A DNA stretch of 64,000 nt. Source: Pavona decussata (taxonomy: Eukaryota). Every line of letters begins with the position of its first letter. The first letter of the stretch is position 1. The DNA lies in NCBI GenBank assembly GCA_977016875.1, contig CDRNST010000093.1, positions 7,440,001 through 7,504,000 on the forward strand, written 5' to 3'. The position numbers and the translations under genes were made by a program. Below are positions 3,033 to 25,962 of the stretch, piece after piece. The notes beneath the pieces are model-generated. The model saw nothing but the letters and a program-made list of their open reading frames with translations. It was not told the DNA's origin and made no database searches.

Positions 3033-4556
3033 CTTGATGTTGAATTTATTAGTTTAAGATGTGCTTTATCTCTTATCTTCCAAGATCCACCGACAGTGGT
3101 TGGCCGGAACAGTGCTGTTTTGTTTGAAAATACGAAAATTCTTGATTTGCAAGTGACTTCCCCTATATAACATGTAGACTTCACAAGATAGAATATATCT
3201 TTTTACGGCTAAAGTAAAATTTTCATTTTGTAAAGAAAACGCTACGTTTAATCGAATTTTTTTGTTAAATAAACTATGCTCACATCTTTATAATCCTGGC
3301 TCACATCTTTCCCTTTTTCACCATGCTGAACAGCCAGGGAGCAACTCTCTGGTGGGGAGGGGAGGGGGTAGGGGAGGCTGCTAATATCAACATAATACAC
3401 AACATGACCTAGTTGGCTGACGAACCCTCCTCGTAACTCAATGGTTGCAGCATTAGACCAGTTTTGCAGGAAGTCGTGGTTTATCTACAGTCTCAATATT
3501 TAGGCTGTTTCAAGATACATTATCGAAAAAAGCACCCTGTTGTGTTTAGGGATAAAAATCGATTCTTCGGCTTCGGTTGCCTGTCTATTGTTCTCTCGAA
3601 GAATACCGAATCTATATACAGTGTGAGATGCCTCAAGGACTACTGCACGTCCCCTTAATTTTTTTTTACTCACACTTTGGTAGCTCCTGTTGATAGCCTT
3701 TGCTTTTTGTTTTGTTTGTTTTTTTTTTTTTTGTACTTCTTATCTGCCCTTTGTTAATTCTGAAGACTTTTGACTCTTAAGCCTTTTAGAATTTTAACCT
3801 AGTTTGCACTCCTTTATCATTTCTAGTAAGAAACATCGAGACACGAGGTAGATTCGTTTTTAGAATCTTTATTATTATTCTCATTATCAGTGTCATTACC
3901 GTTATTCATTATCATTATCGTTATCATTATCAATATTAAACTTTCTGGCGTTGTGTTTCTCAACAAAGCGTATGCATGGCTCAAAAACTTAATCTGTTTC
4001 AATTCCCTGGTCTATGTTGATGTTATTAAGCTTAAATCCTTCATTTTATGACAAAAGGACTTTACATTTCTGGAAATGCAATAAAAAATTTCAAGTTTTT
4101 TTCCTCGGAAAACATGGAGATAATTCTGTCGTTGTGGTAGACCGTAGTTCAAATTTGGTTTCCCGTACGGTGTCCTACCATTTTGAATTTGACGTCATCA
4201 TATGGCTGTCTTAGGCCTATTATTACAACAAAAGAGTATGCGCTTCCTGAAAACAGACTTACTCAGTCTTGACAGTTTTATTTTTACCCGCTGTTAAAGG
4301 CTGATATGGCCAGCGAAAATTTTCATTTATTTGTGTAATGAGCTCTAGTCACATCGACTTCACATAAGATTACCCATCTTCACTAGGATTCCAGGGAGGT
4401 TTCTTCGTCCAGAGCTTTTGGTTGCTGATCAAGTCCCTTTAATGCACATAACATCAGTTAAACTAGTATGATCGTGGCCCCTTTGAACTGATGATTTGAT
4501 CAAGTGTTGTTCATTTACAAATCTGTAGACGGGAGTCTGTGAAGCTCGTCTAGGGC

Positions 4557-5114
4557 TCATTTGACTTCTTCTATTTCTAAAAACAAAAAGAGAGGAAAAC
4601 AATAACGAACGATGAAAATACAAACAGTAACAAGTGACTGTCTCGTCACCAGTCCTCGCATGCTCAGATTTAAATGAATGTCTTCCCATTAGCCTCTGCT
4701 TATACGTTACGTTCGTTTCTAAGTTCCTGTTGCACTGCTCGAACACACTTTTAAGATCAATTTAAGCGCCAGCGGAAGAAACAAATGTAATCCACAGTGT
4801 ATTGTTTAGGTACGACAGAATAAGTTGACATAAGTATAACTAATAATCAGCATTTATGCAAACATTGTTCATCTTTCCTGGATAAAAGGACGCTTTAGAA
4901 TCGGAATTTTTATAATTCCTTGAATATGAAACCATAGACAACCATTTCAGTAGTAAAACGGACTGAGTGGTCACTTCCCTAAAAGCTCAACGTTCCGCAA
5001 CTATCGAGCGGCCATGTTTAATTTCTAACTGATGTTCTAGTTTAAAATTCTAGGCTAACTTGCTATCTAGGATCCCATCGTCTCCGTCGCTTCAGGCTCG
5101 ATCATGCATCAGCT

Positions 5115-5160
<46 letters not shown>

Positions 5161-8100
5161 ATTAATAAATGATGGTTTATTAAATATCACGCAGTCACAC
5201 CTGAAAGTAAAAGCATAAATCTAGGTAAATTTGACCGCTCTTTATTACACGAAGCCTCCATGGCCCAGTGAATAAGCTCGCGCTTCTTGACTTAAACACA
5301 TGACGGAAAAAGATCAAGTTAGAGGGCATGATTATTTTTACTAGAAAACAAACCTTGATCTCGCTGGCTGTGACTCGGCGTTTCTTCAGCCTCGGGATCT
5401 GAAAGAACAGCCGTCGATGCAGAACCTATAGGGAATCACAGATTTTGGAACCGGATTAAAAATTCTTCCCCGATAACATCTTCCAGTCATCGTCATCATC
5501 ATCATCATCTTCGTCGTGTTCTTCATGATCATTATCATAAGGTTCAGTGTTTACCCTTTTCAAATCTCTTGGGAATCGTATTCATATCAGTGTGTCCCGA
5601 GACACATAAAGAATACCAAAAGAAACAATGCTCGAGAGCCTCAGTCAATTCATCCTTCACGAGCCATTGTATGGGTAAACTGGCCTGCACATTCCTGTTC
5701 CGTCTCCTTGCCTGGCTGTGCTGTTGTCTACAGCTCTCGCCGCCCAAACCTTCTTCTAATCCCCTTATTAAGCCATAGCTAATAGCGGTTTCGTTTCAAT
5801 GAACTCAACATTCAAGCCAGTGCTATTATATAGTGATAAGGTTTCTAGGCTGCAAACCTTGATCTCGTTGGCTACGAGCACGCGTGTCTTCCGGTTCAAT
5901 ATCCGAAGGGACAGCCCTCGATGTGGACCCTGGTGACGCAGAAATTTCACATGCATAAGTGGGTTAAATTCCTCATGATCAGATCGTACATATAATTGTC
6001 CCCCCCCCCCCCCCCAAGAAGAAAACAGAAGGTACTCGGAGGAAAACTGTATTAAGTAGTTATAAGCAGTGTGGCTGGAGTCACTTCACTAAACCCAGTT
6101 TAGGCAGCAAGGTTTTTTTTTTTAAAGAATTCCGTCCTTTAAACCATCGTAGTAAGTAAGCGCGTTTGGCGATATCTTTCAGTCGAATCCAATTTGGAAA
6201 TTTTTATTAGTCTGCTTACGTACTATCGATACAATATAGACCTAATTGTAAGTGTTTTCCATTTCTTTGTCTATGCAATTCTATTGATACTTAACCCTCT
6301 TTTATGTCTTGCAAGTGGTTATGGATGAAACAAACGAATGGTTAAACCTTGCAATTCAACGCAATCGCTGTCGGTTCTCCTTTCGTTCTGTTCGATGTCC
6401 ACTGGAGGAGTTGATAATTCTGATGAAACTGAAATTAAAATACTGTCAATATATTTCATTTTTATCTTTCAGTTTATCGATTTCCATTAAAAAATAATTA
6501 TATATAAATAAGTATAACAAATCAAAGCCAAAGATATTGGGGGATATGAGTTTGTAAGACCTACCAAGACGGTCAACATCATTTATCAATGGTAGACTCG
6601 TATGCACAGGTCCATTATCCTCTCGAGGGCTTGCCGCGGTTATGGTTAACACCGGACCTAAAAAAAATAGGCATTTAAGTGTAATTTTATCCGAAGGTTT
6701 GGCTGGTTACCTTCATTGGACTCAACTGAAGAAAGGACAGTCCATCACACTTGCATTTAAACAAAGTCATTTTTTTATGCCAAGGTTAAGTCCGTTACCT
6801 TCATTGGAGTCACTTGAGCTCATAAATGCGGTGGCAATAAGCAATGGAACTACAATACAGGTTCCAAAGGCTGCTGGGAAGGCAGCACGTAAAAAATCGC
6901 CGACTGATCTGTTGAAGACAAAAAATGATTCAAAAATAGAGTTTGGGACCGGCTGAACTGGTCCCTAATGAAAAGGGACATTCTACTTTGTCCATTGAGC
7001 TGATTAAAGAGGCATTATAATTGGTCCCTTGTGCTACCTGAGTGTTGCCATAAAGCCTGCGCTGCGCAACTGGCAGGATTGTTTAAGCTGTGACAAAATT
7101 TGTTCGGGGGAACTTGGGCTCAAATGTTCGTGAGCCACGAATTATCGTGGATATCTTTACTATGGAAAAAAGTACCCTGGATCTGTAGTAACCTGTCAGA
7201 AAGAAAAGAAAAACAAACACAACAAACCCAATAATTCTTACCCGTGGTCGTCGGGATAAAACATTTGGATTGCCAGAACTATTCCGCCAAGTAAAACTCT
7301 TTCCGTGCATTCAAATACTCCGGAAATAAAACAGCTGGCTTCCTGAAATGAAATGTCAAAAATATTAAGATCATGTTGTACGAGAAACAAGACGATATTA
7401 ATGTTCTCTATGAAAGCTCGAAGAGCGTCGAAAAGTGGGAAGTTAGTCTGCTTTGAGGGATAAAACGTGTCACGTTCTCGTCTGAACAGGGCAAGGAGTT
7501 TGAGCTTCTAGCTGGTAGATACAGCAATCACATGTCATATTAGTGACATCTTTTACTATCGCTGATGGGTCCCTTACCTTTTGGTTTCCAGTTACCTCCT
7601 GATACAGGGTTGGCGTTACCATGGTGAGAAGCGAGGACATGCAGGCAAATATGACCGTGGGTGCATAAACAAGAGGGGTTCGCTCTGCTGACTGTAGAAA
7701 GAACCACATTGAAGTCCCAAAAATGGCGGAGGTTGTACATAAGACAACGATCTATAAAAAAGAATGAATTAATTAACATACTTGCTACAATAAACGTGAG
7801 AGAATATAACACCAATTAAAATGAAATAGTGACAGTCAGACAGCTAAGAATGACTATAACAATGACATAAACAACTTTAGTGTCAATGGAAATAGTATTG
7901 CAGTGAGGTTAACTGGCAATGGCAATTACAATGACAATCAGGACAATGGCACTCAGAGTAACAATGGTAATGCCAGTGACAATTTCAATGGCATTGTCAA
8001 TGACAATGGCAGTGGCAATGGCAACAACAATGATAACAACCATGAAAATGGTAGCTACAATGACTTCGATGACAATATCAATGCGATATCAATAACAATT

Positions 8101-10384
8101 ACTACGGCAATGGCAGTGACAATGAGTGGTGATGGCAATGACACTGATAATCACAGAGTAATGGCAGTAGCAAAGACAATGGCAGAGGCACTATTTCCTG
8201 TTTCTTTTATGCTCGAAAGCTAGTCAGATACCCGATCACAAGCAAAATTGCCATAGAAAAAGATTTCGTTGAAGGAATGCCCATTAATCCGCATTTCGCA
8301 AAACAAAACGACCAGACAACATTTTATGAAACAAATTATTACCCTAAGTTTCAGCTTAAAAATGAAGTTTCTTGATATTATTTCTGTCACGATACGAGTT
8401 ATCACAATTATCAATGGAAAGAAGGCGACTGACTCCTGAAAAGAAAGAACAAAATAGGTTAAATTACTTGTATTATTATTACTGTAAATAATTATGAATA
8501 AGTTTCTAAATCAATAGAGCAGTAGACTTAATCAGTGATAATTACACCAAAACTACTGGGAAAACGAAACCTAAAAAAACAATTTTTATATACTTACTTT
8601 TCGTAATCGAAGAGTTTCGATGAGGTAGAGTGGGAGGAAACATTGCACAATCCGAAAAGCAATCTTTGTGAACAGGACAACAAATCCAACCTGAAGGCAA
8701 AAAAAAATTCACAAAACTGGTCTGGATTATCAAATAGAAACGGAGAAAGAAGAGATAAGAGTAAGATATATCACATATCACAAAAGTAAAGTGCTTTCCA
8801 TTAAGCTAAAATGTTCCGTTGGAAAATCTAGAAGTTTCGGTGTTAAATGGAAAGGCTTTTTCATCTGGGCGAAGAACCTTTCAGTTTCAGTTCCAATATT
8901 GCAATCTTATTGGTAGATCACGGTACTTACGTGACAAAATGGAATTCGAAATCGTGTGCAAATGGACGGGTAATTTTTGGTTACAACCGACTGGAGAGAA
9001 AAGGCACGTGGAGTACCTCCTTAGATTGTCCGTGTGTTCTGGAAAATTAAATTGTTAATGAGTGTGAGAAGACAGAAGTTGTGATAATTACTGAAATGGT
9101 TTAAGTCGCTAACCTTGTATAGTAGGGGTTCTTTGAGCCATTCGTACCACGTCAATTTTGGTCTGCGATCTAATCTTATCATCTCTTGATTCACTATCGT
9201 ACTTGGTGATGAAATGTCTGCGGTTGACCTACCACAGTTTTTGTCTTGAAAAGAAAGTAAAATATGACACCATTGTATCGATATCACTATACATTTTCCG
9301 TATCGTACTTGAAGACACCCATCGACTCATCCTTATAAATGTTATGAGGAATCAAACGGATCTGATGTGATATTATACCTTCTTCCGTCTTTCCCTCTCC
9401 ATGTTCGCCAGGCCGATCACACTGGGGTCTGGGCTCCAAGACTGTCAAATGGAACGCAAATACGAAAACGAAACCAACCGGAAGTAGAATGAGGACCAGA
9501 TACTGAAAAATAAAACAATGTAGTATTATAAGCCAATCACATGTCAGACAAAAAATTACTGGAAAGGTTAATGATGCGCGGAAAGGTTGGGTATCAAAGA
9601 CAAGCACCAGCAAGGAAAAACGACGTTCTCTGCTTCCAGGAACTTTTGACAAGTAGTTTTCGTCCCATTTCATATCCAGATCTCCCATGGTCAGCACAAA
9701 ATCGAGTGTGATCTGGGAACAAGATTAGGCTCAACCCTCCTTAAAGAGAAGGGACTCGCTCCTAGTTAGGACTTCATAGTGTAACTGAGTTGGTTAAAGT
9801 GAAACTGTTGGAAGGTACAAGTTCAATGCTAGTGCAGTTATCAAAAGGAAAGCCTCAGGATAACAGTTGATTTTAAATAAACGCAGATGCCGTTTTCGTG
9901 ACTACCACTTTCGGCTTCATTTATGAGTCACGTTATGTAACCAACTCGACAACTGTTTCAGTGCAGACCTTTTCCTTTTGGGTTTTGATGTCGGGTAACT
10001 GGCAATCATAAGTAAATTTGCACACAATCAAGGTATTATCAATAGCACTAACCGCAAATTGCTCGCTGATCTTTGAATTCACTCTGTTTTCTGTACTGTC
10101 TTGCAACAAGAACCACAGCACTATATAAAGGCATACTTTGGATAAACGTACAATGGACCTGCAACAGAAGTCGTTAGAAACAAATGTAGTTATTCGTCTG
10201 TTGTGCTCGACCAGGGCACACAAGGGTAGTCGAAAATTCAGTGGTGCACCTTTGAATCACGTCAAAAGAAAACTTTAAATTTATGTCCGTTATTCAACCG
10301 TTACCAAGATTTTGATAAACTTTTAACATCAGGGCCCAGTTGCTCGAAGCATGGTTAGCGCTAACCCGGGTTAAATACCATGAC

Positions 10385-10421
<37 letters not shown>

Positions 10422-10447
10422 CGCTAACCCGGGTTAAATGCCATAAC

Positions 10448-10481
<34 letters not shown>

Positions 10482-11931
10482 CAGCGCTAACCATGCTTCA
10501 AGCAACTCAGCCCAGAACAATAATACACATCATACACACTTTAACCAACTCATTCGCAATCCAAAACAGTTTGTCAGTGAATTTGCTATGCAAGCAATGT
10601 TATGCGACATAATTAATATAGAAAAACGAACGGGGGGGGGGGGGGGGGGGGAAGCCAAAACAAAATTTCAAAAGGAAAAATTTCGCACCAAAATAAGTAT
10701 GGGGCGTTCACGTCACATGTCTAAAATTAATTCCACGTTTAATGCTTCCTTATCAAAACCTTGCAAATCATTTTTTTCACATTACCGACTGAATAGGATT
10801 AAAAAAAAAATAAAATAAAAATAAGATACAGTATAAAAATATTATGACGGATTCATTCATAAATTGTGTAATGTGAAGTGTCTTGTTAAGGATGACTGAT
10901 CACTTTATAAATATATAAAAAATGCTTTTCTATTTCTTTTTGTATCTTGTTTTGTAGTTATGTGGGCGTGCAGTCCTTAAATTCTCATTGACGATTTTAA
11001 TTTAGTCTCACCAAGAGATCAAACAACCTGCTACGTTCTAGTGTAATATCAAGACATAATCAATCAAAAGTTAACGGTGATCTTTCTTTGCAACACATTT
11101 TATTTCTTTTCAATAACATGTAAGATATTATTTTGTCAAAACACGAAAACCAAACCGAGAATCAATCGAGAGAGGCTCAATTCAAGAGAATTATTTATTC
11201 AAATAACAAAGCAAATTGTTTGGTATTTCTTCGCGTTATTAAAACAGATTTGCGACAATGACCACAGTCTTACACAAATCGTTTTCATTCGTTTCAAATT
11301 TGTGGTAGAATAGTTGACAAAAAAATTTTGATTTTGTGTTTGAAAATATTGTTCGTAACTACGCGTTGTGGCAGTAAACTCACCTGGATGTTTCATAGTC
11401 TTTGTGGTTTTCTTTCTGTAGTTCTTTCATCAAGGAAGAGTAGCCCATTTCCGCGAGAGGCCAGCATGTTGACAGTAGGACCACGGGCATAAGATAATAC
11501 ACACCTAATGCTAAATTTGAACTACCAGCCCCGCAAAACAAACACGGTGTGAAGGTAAGTGGCCAAGCAAAGAGTATACCAGCTGAACCGATAACATGTC
11601 TGGCCTTCTGGATTCCGTACGCAGAAAACGGCTTCCATATTCGTCCGTCACAACCAAAGTTTATCACAAGTAAAGTTACCGCCGTAAGAATTTGAGAAAT
11701 GAAGAACAAGATTCCAACACTGAGGGGAAATAACCCGATAACATTCTGAAAATAAAGCAAGGCATAACTGTACCACACATTCGAAGTCAGGTTGTTCAGT
11801 ATATGACCTGTCTTGCATGCAATACGCTTCCTTATCGACGGTTTCGTTTCCTCAGTGATGTCATCGACGCCATTGTTGCTGGACACAGCTGTAATATCAC
11901 GAGAACTGGCCATTCTTGTCAGACTCGTCAT
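4557..11931 (-). CDS. Divergent MFSD12-like MFS (GPH family) transporter, paralog A. Core exons 11384-11931, 10053-10158, 9379-9502, 9114-9244, 8598-8690, 8343-8435, 7578-7751, 7242-7342, 6799-6908. Putative tail exons 6711-6725, 6565-6657, 6348-6428, 5858-5929, 5354-5425, 4557-4576. ~610 aa if all are used.
   Basis: GT-AG exons with consistent phase, colinear with paralog B (93/93/174-nt exons identical in size). Motifs GHILNNLTSNVWYSYALLYF, WPLTFTPC, TWYEWLKEPLLYK, FLPLYLIETL, ESVAFFPLI, VYAPTVI. Tail exons are lower confidence. AATAAA on the minus strand at ~4326-4331. Confidence 0.85.
5117..5170. repeat. (TAAA)n microsatellite
   Basis: Tandem TAAA units. Confidence 0.9.
7830..8190. repeat. 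Degenerate AAT-GGC/AAT-GAC hexamer-like minisatellite, intronic
   Basis: Recurrent aatggc/aatgac/acaatg units in the intron between exons 8343 and 7751; gives a spurious N/D/G-rich ORF. Confidence 0.75.
10332..10512. mobile_element. MITE with internal ~58-bp tandem duplication
   Basis: GGGCCCAGTTGCTCGAAGCATGGTTAGCGCT ... AGCGCTAACCATGCTTCAAGCAACTCAGCCC terminal inverted repeats; internal unit present twice. Confidence 0.8.
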
Positions 11932-13369
11932 TCTTCATGTTGGCTTTCCCGCTTTGGCGGCAAAATGGAGATTCGCGATTCCAGTGAGCAAAAATTGTTC
12001 TTCTCTCGTCTTAAGCAGCAACTCGAAAGCTCTATTAACCCCGACTGATTTAAATTTTAAGATGCTTGTTATCCATCGATCAATCTTCATTCATCAATTC
12101 AAGATATTACAATTCGAAATAAACAATGTGACAGGAGTCTCCTCACACCATGATTTTACTGACTCACTTCATTACTCTTGACCGGAATAAAACTTATACG
12201 AGTTTTGTCCCAACACACAGACAGCTTTTTTGTCATGAATCTTTTAGACGCAAAAAATCGAGTACTTCTAAGTGAAGTAAAGATTTTTTGGTGGTCGGAA
12301 AAAGTGTTCAATCAACGCAAAACTCTATGTGGTTAATAAAATATTTATTTTACACAAGGTACTCTGATAATTTCAATTTTTCTTATTTTAAATATTTCGC
12401 GTCAGTTTTCAGGTTTGGTTTTGTGGTTTTCGTATTCACTATATTTTGGTCAAAATAAAAAACAAAAAAGTTTTCAGAAATTTACTAAAAACTAATAACT
12501 GTTCTTGTGATAATGGACAGTAACCATTAAGTAAGAAAAGTAAACAAGGAAATGGAATTCAAGGATAACAAGCTACTCAAGCTTTAATGATATTTGCCAC
12601 ACTATAACTATAACTGAAATATCATATCGTAAAACTGATTACTTAAATATTACTTATTTGCAGGGACAACTATCGGAGAAAAATAAGCTCCTTTTAGACC
12701 GATCTTCCTAAAAGGTTTAAATATTTAATTTACAAAACAACCATCTTAAACATAAATCTGTTTTCATACGTCATAATTGAGGTTGTTTTTACTGTGATTT
12801 TTACCAAGCCCACTACTGAAACAGAAACATTAGTCATAACAATACTTCGGAAAATATTATCCGTCTTCCGTGAAATAACAGCTCCCACTCTCTGTGCTTT
12901 TAAAAAACAAATAAATAGCCTCGCTGTCATTGGAATACTGTATATAATCCATAACACCATTTTAACTGATGAATACTTTGTATTACTTTGCACACGGCTT
13001 TTCTATAACGAAGGAGTCTTTTACTGATGTAAATTCCTTGGTTAAATAAACTTTATTCACTCATTCATTCGTTAACCAATCATAGTTAAACGGAGGGAGT
13101 TCTCAACAAAAACAATATCTAAATGGTGTTCAGAGATACTAAGTAAAATATTGATATATATTTCTGCCTCCAAAACACAAATTCACTGCCGGACAAAGAG
13201 TCACGCAAAGTACCGTGACGTTGGCAACTAATCTCGTACCCAGATCTCACTCGGTTTGGGAATGTCAAAATGGGTACGAGATTAGCTGGAAACTAAATTT
13301 TCAAACTTACCCCTCTCTCATCCGCAGAGGCTCCTTCATAAAAAAGGAGCGAAAAGTCGCAACCCGCTG

Positions 13370-14065
13370 GTTTATATGGCATGAAGCAACCTACAGGAGG
13401 GTCATGGGCTCCTGGCAACTAGGAGTATTTGTGAGGATACTCCCCACTGGATGGGATGCTAGTCCATCGCAGGATTACCCCCAGCAGTACATTGCGGGTA
13501 CACATTTACGTACTTACGTACCTGGGAGAAGACAGACAGTGTGGAGTACAGTTTCTTGTCGAAGGAACATTTTACAATATCTGTCCAAATTCCCGCGCGC
13601 TGATTGGCTCGTAGCTATTGTCTATAAGAGTTTAGCATACCTCAGTGACCGACTATCGCGTAACGCGCAATCTGACTGGCTACACAGGAGCCGTCTATCG
13701 ATCGATAGACGGCAGTTTGTCAGAGCGCGCGCGATTTAGGATGCATCATTGCACAAATATATCATAAACCTCGAGCTCCCCGTCTAATTGTTAAACAGAC
13801 AATAAAAATGACGTCAGACGTCAGATGTAACGCGCACGGCGCTTTCTCAGAACGAAAAAAATAGCCAATTCCGCTCGTACTGGTTCCATTTGAGTTTTGA
13901 ACATTTTTTGACGTCATTTTATGGTCTATAAGAGTAAAGATCATAGAAAACTGCTGTCGATTTGTTAAACACAGTAACAAAGAGACCAACCTAACCTCGA
14001 ACCACCGATCTTCCGACCGACAGACTGGAAGTCCGACACGCTAATCACTACACCACCGCGCCTCT
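13370..14065 (-). mobile_element. tRNA-derived SINE (antisense) split by a nested ~400-bp insertion (~13570-13975)
   Basis: GGAGTATT..ACTCCCC..GGATGGGATGCTAGTCCATCGCAGG core, and a CTCGAACCACCGA...CTAATCACTACACCACCGCGCCTC head; same family as 31705-32020 and 49590-50100. Confidence 0.7.
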
Positions 14066-14430
14066 ACCTTAGACATAAGCGTATCGACGGATACCAAGCA
14101 CATAGGAAGTAGAGGTTGTTAGTTAAGTATGCAATCTTGCATGGACATGTTCGCCCTATTGTTAAACGTCATCCACAAAAATGGGTGAGTTTTGCATGAA
14201 TAAACGCATGCGCGTCCAAGAAATCGCCTTCCTTTTTGCTTCATAATAGCAGCTTAGTTGCTGTTATGAAGCAGGAAAAGTTTCAGTACCACAAAGAGGC
14301 GGAGTTGTCAAACTTATAACTAAAAAGGATGCAAAGTCTTCCTTTTTAAAAAAAAACTGGCGTCTGTTAGCACTATGAAGATGTGATTTTAAGATTGCGA
14401 CTAAAGCTCAGCAGCACTTCGTCGAATTAA

Positions 14431-14839
14431 GGCGGGGGTACACCTGAAAGCCGTTTTCACGCCGCTTAAAATCGGTTCAACGGAAATATCTCGTTCGCGT
14501 TTCAAGCAATACAAAAACCCTATGCTCATTACACAAATCAATATTTTGGGGTGTTTTGTAAATTTTGGGGTGATTTTTAGGTATATTTGGAAGGAGATAG
14601 TTTTTCTCAAAAGAGTAGTAAAATTAACAGAAATAAGAAATATTGAAGGTTTAGTGAAGTTTTAAAATTAGAATTTGTGGTTAATAATTAATAGACGGAT
14701 ACCAAGTTAGTCCACTTGAAACCCGGGGTGCTCTTGCGTGGGTATCAACTGTCTGTTAGTGTTCCAAAAATCATTTTCTTTCTTCTATCCATTCTTAAAA
14801 CCTCTTCAAATTTCACTCAAATTCGGGTATACCCCCGCC
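14431..14839. mobile_element. Kolobok-like MITE with TTAA TSD (copy 1)
   Basis: TTAA|GGCGGGGGTACACCTGAA ... TTCGGGTATACCCCCGCC|TTAA; body closely similar to 40238-40648. Confidence 0.85.
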
Positions 14840-16122
14840 TTAATCTTACACAGAGAACCTGATATACACACGACACCCACCCTAGACTGAAATTACGGCT
14901 CAGACCGGAGTGATTCTCATCATGCCGCTCTCCATCATTGCCGTTAGTAAGGACACTATAGTGTTTTTCTTTTGGAATTGAGGACACTAGAGGACAAGTA
15001 ACTCATGGTAAGGTACCATATAGTCACCCACATAACCCTAACGCTCCATATAGTCACCCAACCCTCCATACAGCGAGTGCATGCTTTCCATTTTATAGCC
15101 CAAATTTTCGTTTGGAAATTCCGAAAACTTTCGGCGTCAAATGGAAAGGCTTTTTTTTCCATCCTGGAGCTGGCTTTGTTTTGAAACATACCTCAGTGCT
15201 TTTCAAATATAAATGTTGGCATAAGAACGATACGATTTTCATACGAAAAGCAGTGAGGTTTGTATCACAACGGAGTCAACTCCAGCCTCGCTTTCACACA
15301 AAGACCAGGTCACTAAGCACTGAACTGGGCTATTTTGGATGAGTTATTTGCAACAACAGTTAAATTAAGGCCACTGCAGTTTGTCTAAACCCTTTTTATT
15401 GCGTTTACCAACATAACGACCTTTGATAGAAACCATTGATACGAAACGTATACAAAGGTACCATAAATTTGAGATAGGTAAAGCTGTTTATGTCGTGAAC
15501 GTTTGAAAATCGTTGTAATAAATTAATATAGCAAAAAAAAATTCTCCAGTTAAGGAGTGTTTTGCTTATTTTATCAAGTATAAAATTATTGTATGATCAA
15601 TTAAAATACCGTACATTTATTTAAATCCACTGACATCAGTGAATTTGATCTTGCTGTGACAATAAACAAATTTGAGATATTTGTGTAAATAAGACAAGAA
15701 CGGTTATAAATAACAAAAAACCCCGAACAAGTAACGCTTAAAAATTCCCCATGATATATTATAAATCATCATTGTGATTGCTATTAATAAACCACATCCC
15801 TGAAAAATAGGAACGCGGTGCTTTTGTTTCAAGGTAAGCTATAAATAATTCTTCTAAATTTTTTAAAATATTTTTGTCGTAATTTAAAGATAGCTCAACA
15901 TTACTCTTTGAAAACTACAACTGTCACCATTTTAAGCTTTAATTTGACGAAATGTCGCTACAGCCCCACAAAGGATCTTTCTTAGAGGCATCTGCCTTGA
16001 CCTATCAGTATATCACGTGCAATCACTCGACTGCTATGCACTTTTTGTTTATCCTGTCCTTGCCTTGCCACGCGCTGATCACGTGAACCGGAAGAGTATA
16101 AGTGTAAAGCGTTGCTGCTGCG

Positions 16123-19100
16123 TTAGACTTCTGTTGACTTCAGATAAGGCAGTTGGTCAAAGTCAATATCTTCTCCGTAGTCGTCTTTAGCTACAACTGA
16201 AAAATAAACAAAACAAACGAAGTCAGAGACATATTACTTTCTCGGATGGGATTGGCGACTGTTTCGTGCTTTCTTTGATTTGAAGCTGCCTGTGTTTAAA
16301 GCTCTGATTTATGAAGCTAACGCAGGGTGCTCTACGGTTTGCTACAAGCAGGCATGCTCATTTTGAGCTAATCGAGATCAAAACCGTGAATATGCGAATA
16401 CTTTTTATATTTATGCCCCACCCTCTAAAGGGTACCATTCAATCTTTCTCGAGCTTTCCGACTGACAAACATCACAGCTTTTTAACGTATTTAAAGCCAC
16501 TGACCTGTCATTCGTCGTTTTGTGTTGTTCGACTGATTTGGACGATACAACAAGGCCACAATGAGGAAAGCAATCAAAGCCTCTACACCAGGAAATACAG
16601 AGAAAGCACCTCTGAGGTACTGGGCACACGGTTCACCACAAGGTCTGAAATTAGAATACAGATTGATAAGATACGACAGTAATTACTGACATAAGAGGTT
16701 TGAATAAATAGCGGGAACGAGGACAGTTGGAAAAACATCTGGGTTTTCGGAAGTAGCTTACGAGCAATCCATATTTTCTCTAAATATGCGAGTGCGCAAA
16801 AAAAAAGTTGCCTTTCGCGCGGAAACACGACGGACGAGGATGGAGCAGGTGGACAAGTGGTCATGAGAATTAAGGATATTAATAACTTCTCCCCAGTACT
16901 TTCATAAGAAAAGTATGGAGACAAGATGGGAGAATTTGTTTTTTGATATTACGGTTTAAAGATGACTCACCCTGTCGACGTATCCTGCTGAGGATAGTTT
17001 TCTTGCAACGCTAAAACAATGAATCCAAGAGACAGTTTATCCATCAAAGCACACGCGCCATACACGAAACCACTAGATTTCTGTTGGGGAAAAGCAAGAT
17101 AGATAAGTGAAATTTATATATTTTACGCCACAGCAGGGAAGAAAAGAGGCTCTCCTCTGAGCAAAACCGACTTCTAACTTTTGGCTTTTGAATCTTTGTA
17201 TCTCGGGCACTGCAAGAAGCCTTTAGGCAGAAGAACTGAGTTTCGTTGTTTGTAAGCGTTACCTGTAACTGATCACTTCATTTAAGAGTTGTATTTAGCG
17301 CAGAGCAGTAATTGGGGACACTTTCCAGATCGAATTGGAATTTAGGAATGTTTTTTTTTTGTCTTCCCCCTTGAAGCAACCTTTACTCGTGTAATGTGCG
17401 AGTTTGTTAATGAAGTTGCTAAGGGGGTATATTCGAATGAAAGCCAGTGAGCTTTAAATTGCTGTGGTTCTGTATCACGTAACCTACAGTGCATTTTTCT
17501 CTTGAATCCAACTTTTGTGCAGCAAAACCTGTGGGTACTCAAATAAAAGCTATTGGGAAGTATTTTCCGTCGATGCTGTTCCGCCTTTGATCTAACGTTA
17601 CGTGAACACTATTTAGACAATGGAGACTTACTTTATCATCACCAATAATTTCTGCTACCATAGCCAGTGACGTCACTAACATTATAGAGTTTCCGCAACC
17701 CATTATGATCGTTGGCGCATAAATCATATTTCTGTGTGAAACGGGCGTGAAGTAAAACCACGTGGCACAACCAATGACGATCACTGTTCCGGCACAGAAC
17801 AATACCTAGAGAAAAAATTGAGGCAGCCGTGAGTGAGTATAGATAACAAGGCACAAGTGAAGGCAGGAGGTCTGCCTCAGGCTCAAAGATAGCGAACGGA
17901 AAAATGAAAATTGGCGTGCACTGAATTAGGCAGCCGTTCTTCCTACTTGCTAGTCCCCCCCCCCCCCCCCCCACCCAATCCGCTTTCATCTCTTCTCCAC
18001 TGCAAGTGGTCTCCAAAAACTGTTTTGTCTTTCGGTATTTTTGTATTTACTTGTTACGTTAGATAACTGGCAAGATAATTTACTAAGTCGCTCAATAAGC
18101 TCAACGACCCGCAACCTCGTACAATAACCAAACATGAGCGCTATGCAGAGACCAGTAGTATCTATTCTGACAGCAAATATGTTTGTTTGTTTATTTATTT
18201 ATCTGATGCTTTTTAAAACTCACCCTGTTTGAAAAGAATCTGTTTAGTCTTTTTATTCCCGAACTCATCAGAATACCACTGACTAAAATCATAAGAGGGA
18301 AGTACGCAATGGCTTCCTGTTGAAAAACAATACAAGGGAGCTTAGCACATTTCTTTGACGGCCTCTAGGTGATATTTTCGTGGGTGTTGCCGTCGTGCTT
18401 ACGTAAAGTCCGTCTGTAGTCCAGTCTGCAAAGTATGCCACGTACACGCGCGAGTATCGTCCGCGCGCGTTTTGTGTGCACGCCAAACTTTCCAGGATGA
18501 ACGCCAAATTTAGTTTACTGAAGGAAGCTGCTGGAAAATAGCCCTTACGACATAAGGTTCAGAATGTCAAATTTCCACTTAAAATATATTAAAAAATAAA
18601 TTTGTCCTACCATTGATAAATTTTACAAGAATAGCACGAGGGGAGTACCCGTAGGCCAATCATTTACTATCCTTTTCCTTAGCCAATCAAAGCTAAGCAT
18701 GACTTATTAGACAATGCCTTTGTACAAAGGCCAATCAGAGACGAGCTCTCAGATCCTGGTACGTTGTTAGGGGTCTAGAACAAGGCTTTTGGCGCTAATT
18801 CGCAGACGGTTATTATCGGGGGTTATCGTCCGTCTGCGACGCAGGCTATGCACACGGAGGTAACTTCGAAGATCATACCGCACGCGGTGCATGCTAGTAA
18901 AATGACTTTACACGCGCGAGATCTCGTGGAATTCTACCATACGCTGCAGACTGGTCTGTAGTGCGGTATCATGACGAGAAAACCAAAGAAGCTGGCAAGT
19001 GCAATAGAAAGGACTACCTTTTGAAAGTGGAGCGTGTCTGTCAGGTACATGGGGAAATACGACTGATTAAGATTCACTACATTTTGCGTTGTCATGTAGA

Positions 19101-22100
19101 TCACAACAATCTAAAATAAAACAAGCAGAATGCAGTCATCAGTTCATTTGTAATCGCAATAACATCGCAGCGGTTAGTGATATCAATATGTATATTCCCC
19201 TCACCGTCCGCCGCATATTCCCTATGGTACAAGGTGGGAGAAAGTAAACAATGATAATCATCCTCTTTATTCTCATAACCTGACTGTTCAGACAGTGATA
19301 TTAACGAGAGGAGAAATTAGACTTTGGTCAAAATTCGGGATTAAAGAATTCAAAGCTCCAGAAACCATATTCATATCCCGCCCCCACGGCCCCGTTTAAA
19401 AAAGCTCAGAAATTTAAAAGAAAGTATGAAACTAAATTGGGATTTCCATAGGAGTAGGGAGGTCTCTAAAAAAATCTCTTCCGTGGGGGAAGTATGGATA
19501 TATTCTGGATCTACATATTGGTAATCTTCTGGAACGAAACTGTTCGTTTGCAATATACCGATAAGTGTAATCTGTTACTTTTCTTTAATTTTAAATTTTA
19601 TCGAACCCAAGGACAAACGTTGTCAGTTTCGTAGGCATTGCTTCAATACAAAGGGGGAAGAAAGTTACCCTTACCTTGTAGAAGTCCGGACATTTAAACC
19701 ACTCTTTCCACGTCCTTTTTGGCTCGTCATCTTGTGCGTGCGATTCTTGTTTTTGAAGCTCGATTTCAAGTGCTTGTTTTTCTAAATCCTTACATTCTGG
19801 TACATTAGCTGCAGGTTTCGACTTCGAAGGCTTACGTTGATTTTGTTCTAAAATAAATCGAACAATTTGCCAGTCAATAGATTAATCAGTCAAAGTGACT
19901 TAACATGTTTCACAAGGGGCACTCGGATTCACATGACTCGACGTCATATGTGGGTAGAGTTTGTTGTTGGTTCTCTTCCTTGCTCTGATAGGTTTTTCTC
20001 CGGGTACTCCGGTTTTCCCCTCTCCTCCAAAAACCAACATTTCCAAATTCCAATTCGATCTGAAAGTGTCCCCAATTAGTGCTCTGCGCTAACTACATTG
20101 ACACTTGAACAAAGCGATTTATTTTTTTATTTATTATATTAATCCTTGACAACGGCGACCTGGGTCTTCCAGATTATGTTATGAAACGTTAAGGAACTGC
20201 AGTCAGAACAAATTCATCGACTGACTACTCCCAAGCACTGAGAGCCTCGAAACAAGATTAGCGTGATACGCGGTTATCTAAACCAGGCAAACCAGCTTTG
20301 AAAAGTCGTACTCAATCTGGTACTCTTACTCAAATCTTAAGTTCCGTAATATTTTACCTACATCTTCCAATAAAGGGCACCTCTGTGTCAGTGGCAGATC
20401 TTAAAACTGTCCTAATGATCTAGCTCACAGGCGCCGACAGATGCCACCGTGAGGCCAGATAGGGGAGTAAATTGTACCACTGGTTCCATTTATGGCAGAG
20501 CACTTGTACTTAATCTTGTTCATACCTTCAGAGGGATATACTTCTTCAACTCCCCAGTGAAAAATGAAGGCGAAAAATGATCCGGTCAACATTACGATAA
20601 TAGACTGATACTGAAAAGAAAAAAATACACGCCATGCAGTTAGCGCTGGAATTCATGGGAGAAATACAAGGGCGTATTAGCCTGTGAACAACGGGGTTGG
20701 GGGAGGGGGTGCACAGGCTAACCATTCAAGGAGTAGTTCTGTGACGGAATTTAGAAAAAAAAAAGAGAGAAGGTCAAGCAGTGTCTAAAACTCGATACAT
20801 CGAGGGTTAAAGACAACACAAAACCGTAGATTTTGATAATCGTTCGCTGAAGTCTTATTACCGTAAATTGTTTCTGAGCTGATTCGTCAACACTTTCTTC
20901 ACTGTTCTGTCCTAAAAGAATCCAAGTTACTAAGAAGACAAAAACGCCACAACCTAATTTCAGCGCGGATCTGAAAAACAAAATCACAAGATCAGCATTA
21001 GTCTTGGTATTAAATTAGGAATATAAAAATTACAACAACGACGACGACAACAACAACCATGAACAGTTTTTGTTGACATTGAGAATCGTTAGCAAAACTA
21101 GTGCCATTTTCTCAGCCAATGAGAAGCAAAACCGAAAGCAATCGGCCAATCGCGTTGCTTGCACGCGTTTTCCCGCGCTTGGCGCCGGTTACATAAAATC
21201 GCTTCGAGTTCTGATCGGTTCATTGCGCTGTTTACTGCTCATTCAACTCCTGAGGTCATGAGAATTAAAGATCAAGGTGAATTTTCTTGATATTTTAATA
21301 ACTTCTCCCAAGTACTTTTATAAGAAAAGTATGGGGACAAGACAGGAGAATTTGTTCTTTGATATTTGGCGTTAAGGGGTTAATAGTCTCAGGGTCTTTC
21401 TTCTTGCCCACGGAAAGAGCTAGAAAAGAGAGGAACTAATCCTAAATCAGTGAACATCGGTAACCGCGTAATTACAGTGCGACACGCCTTACCTTGGCCA
21501 CCCAACAAACTCTTTTTTTTTTATAAGTTAGCCAATCAGGATACGCGAATTTGATTAACGGTCACGCCTCCTTGCAAAGTCCAACAGGCAAGTGACGCAA
21601 CAGCGAATTATTGAAAACATGTCGTTTTGTATTTTATGAACAAGGAGGAAGATATCCTGATTGGCTAACTTGTAAAAAAAAGTTTGTAGGGTGGCCACGG
21701 TAAAGCGCGTCGCACTGTAACACTAATAAACAAATTTGGGTTAGCTAGTGTTTCACTTCTGCTCCTGGGATGGGGGGAGTGGGAAAAGAAGATACTTTGG
21801 AAAGGTTATTGGCTGTACTCCAAGGTTACCATTTCCGTTTTGGTCACAATTTTATACCTTCTACATGTACAAATTCCATGCCTGTCAGTTTTAATGGAGC
21901 CGGATATGGAGGTTTATTTTACCTCTCCATAAGCATGTCACAAGATCGCATTTTGTTTTTTCTGCCCGCCAGAGACACGTACTGATGATTTGCCATGACC
22001 AAGGGTTAACACGCGAAATGTCAGCTCTCGAAGCTCTTTACAGTGGCCAAATTACATAACCAAATATTCGTCTTCACTATCCCCACCGGCGCAACACCAC

Positions 22101-25100
22101 AGTTTGTTTAGAAACTAACCGCCTTATCTATTCGTTCTAATGATGGACTGGAACTGGAAAGATGATCGGATTTGAATTGTCCTATTTTCATTCCAAACGA
22201 ACTGCACGAAAAGAATGTATAATTTTCAACAGCTTTGAGTGTGGTCACACTTACGAATTTTATCAGTCCGACACAGGCTCAAAAATTTAAACCACATTTA
22301 TTACTTTAACCCTTAGTGATCAGCATCAAATTTTTCCTTGCAGTATCATATGATCACCCAAGGTGATCCCCAGTACTTTTATAAGAAAAGTATGCGGACA
22401 AGATAGGAGAATTTGTTCTTTGATATTAGGGGTTAAACTTTGTCTCGGATAATAAAATGGTCAATAGCTGTTTCGTCGCAAATGCGAGCAATTTCTATGG
22501 TGAGGAAAATTATTTGACCGAGAGTTACTACTATTTCATGAAATCAGCTTTGTAGAATAAATCTGATAGAATTTCGCTTTCCTTGAGATGAGATATTCGT
22601 CTATGAAAACAATTAAGATCACACCAATTAATGATCATTTTTATCTCATTTTACAAATGTTTTCGTGATGTCCCCTTGTGGATTTTCGTTCATTTTCTTG
22701 TAATTTGATAGATTTCCTGTGAGCATCACCGGCTCACCTGCCGACCCGTTGGGGCGGAAAGGGGGCGTGGTGGGGTTAAAACAAGTGACGCCTGAGTAAA
22801 GCAAGCCAGGCCTTCCTCTTCGCACTACTGTGGACCCAACTAAACACGGTTCAACGAATGCAATTATTCTGCTTAATCTTGCGGAATTGCGCCTGATTTT
22901 AGCTCACTCGGCCGCTAAGCGTCAGGCGATGTACCGCGCGCGAGACTTCGCAGGATAATTATTGAATGAAACAAACGTTCAACACTTGTTGCTAAAAATA
23001 GTCTCTGAATTGTAGGTTTATAGCTGTTTTAGTCAAACCATGGGAACATAAATCAGGGAGGGGAGGGGGTCGGAATATAGCTCTGGACAAAAGCATTGGT
23101 ACATATGAACGAATAGTACGATTTTGTTTTTGTCTGCTTGTCTTTTATGCTTACAGCATTTCATTTTATGTACTAAAAGGAAAACGAACGTTTGCGTTAA
23201 CATTGTCAACTTTCTCGTGACTCGAAGCTCAAAAAAAGATTAATAAGGATTTAAAATTTGAACAAGAAAATGAAATAAATGAGGTTTTCAAGAAGCGCAA
23301 AGCAAGGATGTACTAGATAAGAAGGAATTCGGCGGAAATAGCTGTCGGCATAAGCTTTAACGTTATGTAACTGTTGCAGTGATTATACGAATCCCGCCGA
23401 GCTAGCGGCCTAACTTAGAATCCCTTGACATGCTGCATCATCACAGGATGTGACGCTAGCAATATTGCAAAATTTTGCTAATACCCCGAGGCTGGAGACT
23501 AAAAAAAATAGATCCATATTTACCAAAGGAATTGATGAACTTGAAAAAACAGAAATTCTGTAATGATAGTAGTAATGAACACTCTTTTTATGCCTGTTTC
23601 GGATATGCGATAAAAAACTAGGATTTACAGAATTAAAAGGCGCGGAATATTTCAATCAACAAGATTACCCCAAACCTATTTTGTTCAGTTTATAAACGCA
23701 GACCGAAATATTTTTCGTGTCACGGAATAGGATAAATATAAATAAACAAAGATTACACAATTTGTTGAGGCTATATAACATAGTAACAAATGTAGAACAG
23801 GTCGATTACACAAATTTGGTAATAAAAAGTTGTTTTTAAAATTCTCAACAACCAACTTGACTTCTCGAGATTCAAGAAATACGTGCGTCCCACAATATAA
23901 GCTGAGAAAATATTGCCATTTCCGTCCGGTAGGAAGTCTTTCAGCTACCTTCTCTAGCCGGCAATGTTAAGCTGACTTTCTCCTATTCAATAAATAACTA
24001 CAGTTTAAAAGCTATTTTAATCCAAATACATAGCGCGATATTGAAAATGGTCATTCCGGCGTACGCCTCCGGGGCAAGCTGGATCATGTACCGCCGCTAA
24101 GTTTTTGTTCGCGAAACAAGTTTTTTCTTTTAATCAAAAGAAAAGTAATACGTAAGACAAAGTGACTGTAAAGTTGTTTTCATATGTAAAAAACATTACA
24201 ATATCTAGGCAAACAATACTGCAATTAAGAATTTTTTAATAAATACCTGTGCACGAAAATTTTCTCTTCAAAGTTAGATGTGATTTTCATTATTTTTTGT
24301 TTTACTTATCTTATTTAACCTCTGGGTTTTTCGCGATCCAATGAAACACATTACAGTCGCGTATTAAACCAAGTTGAAGGTGTAAAATATTTAACAATAA
24401 AGGGAATTAAGGATTTGCATTTTAACCGGATATTTTTCGAAGGTTTGTATTCCGGAATAAGAATAAGCGGACTAGCTGTTAGATTTCTCTCTTTCAGTAA
24501 ATTTGGGAAGACATTTATGCAAACTTTTGTTGAAATATGAGCGATTTCTTGTAATCACTTAATGTATATTTATTCCTGAATAGGGTCAATCGAACGCACC
24601 CTTAAAAGTGCATAATTTCCATTCGAGCTGTCGATAACCATACCGAATAGTTAGAGGATGCTAGAATTCACCACTTGAGCTCCGTATAATGCATTTTGCG
24701 TGTATGCAGGATAACGAATTTTTGAAAGCGCGATAAACATTTTGTTGTCAGTTGGAAATCGAAATTTGCTTTTCATTAGTTGCATGCAATAATAGGTGCA
24801 ACATTATTTTCAGTATATTGGCTTCATAACCGAGAGTCCAAGGGTCGCGGATGTATTGTACGTTTCTAGTAAACAACAAGCTTGCCACAAATCGGTTATT
24901 GTGCTTCTTGTACATGCTGATTTTCAGCGAAGCCTGCCCTTGAAAAGCTTCTTTATTCAAATCTCTTGTTATTCAAATCTTATTTTTCTGGGCTTCGTTT
25001 GAGTCACGAGACATCTGTACCGATCATCTGATAACAATGACTCGTTGTTTTCCGGTCGCTTTCGAATGCCGTCAAAAGGAAAACCCAGCTTATCAATAAA

Positions 25101-25962
25101 TGATGCAACGCAAATAATTTTTTTTCGTCAAGCTTACCGGTACGATGGATCAAAACACGAACATTATGGGATTTAAATAACGCTTACACAATTATATTTC
25201 GTCGGCTGGTTGAGATTGCGGGATGAATATTGTTTTGAAATCAAGCAGCTATTGAAAATGAAAAAAATCACCGCGGCAAATATGGGAAAACCTTTCAGTT
25301 TGCAAGCAACGCTTGGAAGAAAGCCAATACAATGCTGTACCGCATGATATTTCACCGCCAACGATGAAAATATCGGAAATTATCGAATCGGGTTTTTTTT
25401 TTAAGCATGATTTTATAATTCTTAAAATTTCTCACCTTATTGCGCTCAGCTCCACAGCATCCTTGGGCCGTTTAGCAATATGCGGCATCAGCGATAGATG
25501 ACTGATTTCGACCATGGGCCAAAAAACGCTAAAGAAAGCCGCCAAAGCTCCATAATACGCTACCGGGACCCAACTGGGACTGTCCTTGTTGCAAACTAAA
25601 CACGGGCTGAACACGAACGGCCAAATTAACGCAATTCCAACGCTACCAAAGAAATGCCATATTTTTCTGTTGCCGTACTTTCTGCTAATTGTCTTGGAGA
25701 TGGATTTGTCGCATCCATACCCAATAAACGGGGTGGAAATAGCATCGGCGACTTGCGAGGAAAGGAAGATGTAACCGGTGCCCGTTGCGCTGATTTTGAT
25801 AATTTTGTTGAAGAAGATTATGAGATAGGTGAACCATGCCTGAATGCAGAGGTCGTTAAATACATGGCCGACTCCATAACAGATCTTTTGTTTCAATGAT
25901 GTCCTTTCTTCTTTGTGAACAAGCGGTCCGTTCTTTTTACCGCGTCCGCAAATCCAGACCAT
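16123..25962 (-). CDS. MFSD12: MFSD12-like MFS transporter, paralog B (canonical). Exons 25436-25962, 20862-20970, 20526-20610, 19675-19847, 19018-19110, 18224-18316, 17632-17805, 16971-17080, 16505-16644, 16123-16196. ~525 aa.
   Basis: YGVGHVFNDLCIQAWFTYL, SQVADAISTPFIGY, EISHLSLMP, TWKEWFKCPDFYK, NLNQSYFPMYLTDTL, IAYFPL, GCGNSIMLVTSLAMVAEIIG, SSGFVYGACALMDKLSLG resemble MFSD12. All introns are GT-AG and phases sum to an open 1578-nt CDS. Several MFSD12-like paralogs may exist, so the symbol is family-level. Confidence 0.9.
16860..16960. repeat. Short dispersed repeat (MITE-like family), also at ~21245-21382 and ~22305-22436
   Basis: Shared CCCAGTACTTT(T/C)ATAAGAAAAGTATG..GACAAGA..GGAGAATTTGTT.TTTGATATT core in three introns of paralog B; copies 2 and 3 end GGGGTTAA. 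Confidence 0.75.
19925..20125 (+). mobile_element. tRNA-derived SINE (5'-truncated)
   Basis: ATGTGGGT.GAGTTTGTTGTTGGTTCT...GGGTACTCCGGTTTTCCCCTCTCC...AACATTTCCAAATTCCAATTC body, shared with 48165-48430. Confidence 0.8.
21475..21717. mobile_element. TA-flanked palindromic MITE (Tc1/mariner-like)
   Basis: TA|CAGTGCGACACGCCTTACCTTGGCCACCC ... GGGTGGCCACGGTAAAGCGCGTCGCACTG|TA; internal AAGTTAGCCAATCAGGAT is also inverted. Confidence 0.85.

Follow-up and report, generated by a model that had tools for sequence, protein, structure and literature searches.

The analysed window, a 64,000 nt stretch of the coral Pavona decussata (GenBank assembly GCA_977016875.1, contig CDRNST010000093.1, positions 7,440,001 to 7,504,000), contains two tandem minus-strand genes of the MFS_2/GPH type, here called A and B, with A lying ~4.5 kb downstream of B. 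Overall, it is somewhat probable that A is a live, selectively kept and rapidly remodelled duplicate of a B-type gene that may still act as a carrier with altered coupling or substrate. In particular, that A is a live, constrained and diverged B-type duplicate is very probable; that it still works as a carrier, with its coupling or its substrate changed, is argued by analogy and has about an even chance.

The two genes have the arrangement of tandem duplicates: they are adjacent, lie on the same strand, share intron positions and phases, and fall in a joint clade. An earlier note on this DNA had described them as same-strand paralogs with matching exon phases and sizes. Every shared junction has the same intron phase in both genes, and four exons (exons 5-8; 93, 93, 174 and 101 nt) are equal in size; for exons 1-9, the sizes are 548/106/124/131/93/93/174/101/110 nt in A and 527/109/130/98/93/93/174/101/154 nt in B. 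A stop-to-stop comparison of reading frames yields seven collinear exon matches between the A and B halves. At full length, 456 residue pairs align between the two proteins, 31% of them identical, and the collinearity extends through helix XII. Protein A follows B over residues 24-492, has hydrophobic segments at all 12 helix positions in two six-helix halves, and carries a loop of about 60 residues after helix VI. The motifs that the earlier note had listed are all present (GHVFNDL, QVADA, EISHLSL and MDKLS in B; GHILNNL, QILTA, EMGYSSL and TERVL in A), and the fully open frame that it had reported for A extends over 551 codons in 11 RNA-supported exons.

Gene A is transcribed and correctly spliced, so that the foreseen objection that A might not be expressed falls away. 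A 2365-nt contig from run X3 aligns to A as eleven blocks with ten joints, all within one contig, and an 868-nt contig from a second run (X1) covers part of the same splice form. All A introns are GT-AG once shifts of the alignment cuts and two exon-edge single-nucleotide polymorphisms are allowed for. The metatranscriptome runs X8 and X9 matched only an intronic repeat within A. An unspliced contig from run X1 (window 11168-11763) spans the exon 1/intron 1 border of A and is either pre-mRNA or library-borne DNA.

Moreover, A is under purifying selection. Compared with a close relative (L046; about 7-10% intron divergence, with unsaturated synonymous divergence), the synonymous rate (dS) is 0.238, the nonsynonymous rate (dN) is 0.030 and their ratio (omega, or dN/dS) is 0.127 over 303 codons; there are 41.5 synonymous and 20.5 nonsynonymous differences, where neutrality would give roughly 14 and 48. 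Against three distant corals (L041, L042 and L045), omega is about 0.11-0.15, rough values for which dS is saturated (proportion of synonymous differences, pS, 0.59-0.76). Neither comparison approaches the ratio near 1 that the earlier note had named as the mark of a decaying copy. For B, omega is 0.08-0.10; at nonsynonymous sites, the rate of A exceeds that of B about 1.6 times. The listed differences between the window and the transcript contigs are 19 synonymous and 7 nonsynonymous. Beyond its low omega and its spliced contigs, A shows neither the stops nor the frameshifts of a pseudogene.

To place the pair, a maximum-likelihood tree was carefully built from 70 rows and 166 columns of the exon-1 region. 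In this tree, the A-type sequences are monophyletic with 100/100 support, and A-type and B-type together form a clade with 100/99 support. The B-type sequences by themselves come out as monophyletic in just 7% of bootstrap trees, so that an origin of A within the B-type is probable, with long-branch effects possible. The A-type stem in a quick tree measures 1.09 (about 1.1) changes per site, compared to 0.03-0.16 for the internal branches of the B-type.

The wider affiliation of the pair differs from what the earlier note had proposed. MFSD12 is a lysosomal and melanosomal cysteine importer, with cysteine transport established for mammals only, and humans have one MFSD12. The clade with mammalian MFSD12 (P0065; 100/98 support) holds two other genes of the same coral genome, L002 and L004, and excludes both A and B, which fall in a separate clade of 47 rows (99 in the quick tree). 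L002 and L004, located at C196:2321747-2341796, group with mammalian MFSD12 and are likely the canonical MFSD12 orthologs of the coral. The MFSD12 framing of the pair therefore has to be corrected, as neither A nor B is the ortholog, and cysteine transport is not transferable to either of them. The description of a tandem MFSD12-like pair survives in its wider sense, both genes being members of the MFSD12-like family; the pair is not an isolated one, with at least 31 copies in the genome.

The size of this family was obtained from a six-frame search of the whole assembly (602 Mb), which finds 31 exon-1 homologues for B and 30 for A. A and B thus belong to a family of at least 31 genomic copies, and A is the most divergent of its about 31 members. 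Among the 29 aligned genome copies, A alone is without the helix-I Asp, which the 28 others all have. This Asp is also kept in 98% of 47 non-A family proteins and in 18 of 18 B-type ortholog clusters, and because it is retained across all three sets, its loss in A is more than chance. Of the 29 copies, 11 keep the helix-II Asp, 17 others have H, Q, V, A, M or T at that site, and A has T. Overall, A is the only copy in the genome to have lost the helix-I Asp; loss of the helix-II Asp is recurrent in the family and not special to A.

About 20 MFSD12-like genes lie in a ~310-kb cluster elsewhere in the assembly (C80:2497642-2803471; L007-L010, L021-L027 and L033-L040), where most copies have lost the helix-II Asp and kept the helix-I Asp. 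Like A, this cnidarian expansion has copies without the helix-II Asp (H, Q, V, A, M or T in its place); unlike A, its members all retain the Asp of helix I as well as GRRKSWH and HLS..P, and their clade is separate from that of A and B. The copy at 2720062-2720448 carries two TAA stops, and the copy at 2657550-2657768 is a fragment. No description of the MFSD12-like expansion or of the acid-less A-type clade was found in the papers searched, and the literature searches found no cnidarian MFSD12 study.

The positions changed in A can be placed on a known transporter. MelB is a bacterial sugar/cation symporter in which Asp19 and Asp124 bind sugar, and Asp55, Asn58 and Asp59 bind the cation. Exon 1 of B aligns to Salmonella MelB (4M64 and related entries) at E 5e-6 in HMMER, gap-free through helices I-II, with Asp37, Gln70 and Asp73 of B on MelB Asp19, Arg52 and Asp55, and with Ser76, Thr77 and Glu152 on MelB Asn58, Asp59 and Asp124. 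The D>N and D>T sites that the earlier note had picked out in A (Asn47 and Thr83) therefore fall gap-free on the functional residues Asp19 and Asp55. At the two helix-II cation-site carboxylates (MelB Asp55 and Asp59), A has Thr83 and Leu87. In helix VII, Arg316 of A is Arg in 3 of 3 A orthologs examined. The C-terminal half of the family proteins aligns weakly to MelB; the helix-XI Asp-Lys pair of the family falls on MelB Val376-Lys377 in a weak second domain (i-Evalue 15), so the equivalence with Lys377 is tentative.

As the structural model of the GPH family, MelB (PDB 4M64, 7L16 and 8T60) shares the fold and the helix I-IV register with the pair. Even the B-type differs from it, with Thr at the Asp59 position and Ser at the Asn58 position, and A is without a carboxylate at Asp19, Asp55 and Asp59. 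Because MelB transports sugar with a cation, the substrate of A or B is not inferable from it. Vertebrate MFSD12 (P0065) belongs to the same Pfam family and fold and shares the helix-I GH..ND and helix-II QVAD motifs with B; compared to it, A is without both Asp residues.

The B-type proteins (P0056 and others) are the closest comparison, as they share with A the intron phases, the four exon sizes, the 12 collinear helices and the sister or parent clade. Unlike A, they keep Asp37, Asp73, the STP motif, HLS..P, the helix-VII Asn and the Asp-Lys pair, all of which are changed in A. Further, B keeps most of the GRRKxWH motif (it reads GNRKIWH), which is changed in A, and has no long C-terminal tail; A gains a tail of roughly 100 residues, acidic and Ser/Pro-rich, with extra mini-exons. 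Of 60 sites at which at least 80% of 47 non-A family proteins agree, B retains 51 and A retains 33 (55%). Most of the replacements in A are common to its orthologs (Cys39, Ser79, Arg111, Cys156, Arg316, Ala401, Thr419, Glu437 and Arg438), and for this reason they appear to be a new constrained signature and not drift. With a gathering score of 27 bits for Pfam MFS_2 (PF13347), exon 1 of B scores 52.6 bits and the B-type P0056 scores 120.6 bits, placing B above the cut-off.

The A-type is found in other corals. A word search with A exon 1 recovers 24 protein clusters at 61-93% identity, and a region-restricted search adds P0025 and one named protein, P0026 (Acropora cervicornis). An exhaustive profile-free search of 1.84 billion representatives returns only six clusters below E 1e-30, all of them A-type, after which the next matches drop to 34% identity; as judged from this drop, the A-type is a narrow clade. 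At the helix-I site, 24 A-type clusters have N and P0001 has S, whereas P0025 and P0051, which branch early, have E. The first helix-II site is T, M, V or R, with no acid in any, and the second is L, F or M. Since the two basal A-types keep Glu in helix I, the loss was a stepwise one. Moreover, a locus in another coral assembly (L041) contains all eleven RNA-supported A exons in order at 68-78% identity, with the tail exons E10-E11 conserved at 73-77% and with B exons 2-9 just upstream. In a third assembly, the A-type and B-type first exons are 23 kb apart on one contig and on the same strand. The B-then-A order is kept in these two other assemblies.

Some A-type sequences depart from this exon series. 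P0026 (354 residues) passes from exon 3 to exon 7, skipping exons 4-6; because exons 5-6 are present and open in an Acropora-like contig (L045:13625-15063), this public model is probably incomplete. The same contig, at 4x coverage, has a frame change in exon 7 (L045:15501-15675), which is most likely an assembly error, as P0026 reads through exon 7. At L044:10001-20558 (assembly ERZ25067868), only exon 1 of an A-type gene was found within 10 kb downstream, indicating either a very long first intron or a truncated copy.

In the mechanism that we propose, a cnidarian B-type MFSD12-like transporter would have been duplicated in tandem, and copy A would then have been rapidly remodelled. A would be a functional 12-helix membrane protein of the MFS_2/GPH fold in which the helix-I carboxylate is lost and, as we put it, no polar ligand is left at the helix-II cation positions (Thr83 and Leu87). 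Arg316 has been added in helix VII, and Glu161 in helix IV and an acid-base pair in helix XI (Glu437-Arg438) have been kept. The helix-II cation or proton site would be gone, with the charge of the cavity shifted towards positive. A may as a result be uncoupled from H+ or Na+ at the canonical site, working as a facilitator or exchanger; alternatively, its substrate may be less cationic, possibly anionic or neutral, than that of its B-type parent. The earlier note had called A neofunctionalised, and this holds to the extent that A is maintained, functionally diverged and not decaying (spliced, omega 0.127, 19:7 synonymous to nonsynonymous differences); the helix-II half of its argument describes a change that is common in the family.

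Several points weigh against this reading of A as an altered carrier. The functional meaning given to the changed Asp residues relies on analogy with MelB, and no MFSD12 structure was found in the PDB copy or the papers searched. The helix-II Asp is evidently dispensable for some function of the fold, as the 17 other paralogs are without it, and the acid-free state is not a defining feature of the A-type clade, as P0025 and P0051 keep the helix-I Glu. The loop 2-3 motif of A is partly eroded (GIQKARH, compared to GRRKxWH in the family), and the MFS_2 match of A-type proteins is faint (19.3 bits for A exon 1 alone, 28.2 bits for P0008 over exons 1-3, and no match for P0026); both would be compatible, too, with a protein that has stopped cycling as a transporter. 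In addition to the saturation of dS in the distant-coral comparisons, the RNA label of the runs with spliced A contigs (X3 and X1) was guessed, their RNA origin being shown by the splicing itself.

The most serious rival is that A does not transport and acts instead as a sensor (a transceptor), or as a partner protein with a regulatory or chaperone function, perhaps for B or another member, with signalling or trafficking via its C-terminal tail. The loss of both N-domain carboxylates and the erosion of the loop 2-3 motif would suit such a role, as would a tail of about 100 residues built from extra mini-exons, with E10-E11 conserved in L041, and the tight linkage to B in three assemblies. However, A has conserved all 12 helices together with the Glu of helix IV and the acid-base pair of helix XI, and its helix VII has gained an Arg that is itself conserved. 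Such a pattern looks more like a binding cavity that was rebuilt than one that was given up, and we regard a sensor or partner role as unlikely, if a serious contender.

The remaining rivals are harder to reconcile with the data. It is hardly credible that A is a decaying or recently pseudogenised duplicate with an accidentally open frame: its rank as the most divergent family member, its retention of 55% of the family-conserved positions, an exon 1 below the MFS_2 gathering score, and a last exon that stops 14 codons before that of L041 all point in that direction, but they are opposed by a frame open over 11 RNA-verified exons, an omega of 0.127 at unsaturated dS, at least 24 ortholog clusters with their own signature, the 19:7 ratio of transcript differences, and the conservation of synteny and all exons in another coral. 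Less improbable than decay, and still very unlikely, is an MFSD12-type role in which A, its coupling changed, would import cysteine into the symbiosome or a lysosome-related organelle. Its appeal comes from the place of A within the wider MFSD12-like family and from the lysosome-like nature of the symbiosome, which is established knowledge. Against it, A and B lie outside the canonical MFSD12 clade and two other genes of the genome lie inside; the residues expected to bind the amino group of the substrate, or a proton, are those that are changed; and the sole coral paper found that names MFSD12 treats it as a melanin-pathway gene, with paralogs unseparated. Nothing in the analysis supports a tie to cysteine and the symbiosome, and it loses weight with neither gene being the MFSD12 ortholog.

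The gene models differ in their support (Table 1). The B model is a prediction that combines homology to the spliced B-type protein P0056 with frame-keeping GT-AG sites. The tail of A is predicted from conservation with the ortholog L041 and splice-site enumeration only; about 610 nt of the 2365-nt contig lie below the stretch that was compared. The predicted last exon reads EIEEVK followed by TGA at 4557-4559, which is where the earlier note had placed the start of the region.

Table 1. Features of the A/B locus, in window positions.
Feature	Position	Strand	Remarks
Gene B, B-type MFSD12-like transporter, coding sequence span	16491-25962	-	492 residues, 9 coding exons, homology model
B exons 1-5	25436-25962, 20862-20970, 20481-20610, 19675-19772, 19018-19110	-	Acceptor of exon 4 (19675-19772) uncertain
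B exons 6-9	18224-18316, 17632-17805, 16980-17080, 16491-16644	-	Stop at 16491
Gene A, A-type divergent paralog, coding sequence span	4557-11931	-	About 581-605 residues including predicted tail
A exons 1-6	11384-11931, 10053-10158, 9379-9502, 9114-9244, 8598-8690, 8343-8435	-	RNA-supported
A exons 7-11	7578-7751, 7242-7342, 6799-6908, 6565-6657, 6348-6428	-	RNA-supported
A tail exons	5858-5929, 5354-5425, 4557-4576	-	Predicted; 5354-5425 possibly optional; 4557-4576 includes stop
B Asp37 codon GAC, helix I	25852-25854	-	MelB Asp19; gap-free HMMER alignment to 4m64_A
B Asp73 codon GAT, helix II	25744-25746	-	MelB Asp55; MelB alignment
B Thr77	25732-25734	-	MelB Asp59 position; MelB alignment
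A Asn47 codon AAC, helix I	11791-11793	-	MelB Asp19, B Asp37
A Thr83 codon ACG, helix II	11683-11685	-	MelB Asp55, B Asp73
A Leu87	11671-11673	-	MelB Asp59 position
A Glu161 codon, helix IV	11449-11451	-	MelB Asp124; carboxylate kept
A Arg316 codon, helix VII	8652-8654	-	In place of an Asn 89% conserved in the family
A Glu437-Arg438, helix XI	7298-7303	-	In place of the family Asp-Lys pair
63-bp tandem repeat, 2.3 copies	10351-10492		Within intron 1 of A; outside gene product

The two 72-nt phase-1 mini-exons in the tail of A duplicate each other, and the L041 ortholog has a single copy (18139-18216). At the C-terminus (window 4509-4593, compared to L041:18996-19081), the L041 ortholog is 14 codons longer than A (EIEEVKRALDELHRLPSTDL-stop), and the shorter end of A is a lineage-specific shortening. 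In all four runs, contigs cover the 63-bp repeat in intron 1 at very high depth, which marks it as a dispersed repeat family that is probably transcribed; an Rfam scan of 4000-26500, the repeat included, gave no match.

A broader reading, which is quite unlikely as a whole, would make the A-type a stony-coral-restricted subfamily in which an MFSD12-like importer of lysosome-related organelles was turned stepwise into a cation-uncoupled carrier, a carrier of an anionic or neutral substrate, or a transceptor, with a regulatory tail, serving a compartment particular to corals, for example the symbiosome or the vesicle pathway of calcification. In this series, the helix-II Asp would have been lost first, the helix-I Asp would have changed to Glu and then to Asn, and the Arg would have been gained in helix VII. 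Whatever its role, the A-type is a natural experiment in which the canonical ion and substrate carboxylates are removed, strong constraint is kept, and the unmodified parent adjoins. Intermediates with a helix-I Glu survive in other lineages, and how these residues bear on coupling or substrate choice is testable by A/B swaps. A bearing on the supply of sulfur or cysteine from the coral to its symbionts is, for now, a hypothesis only.

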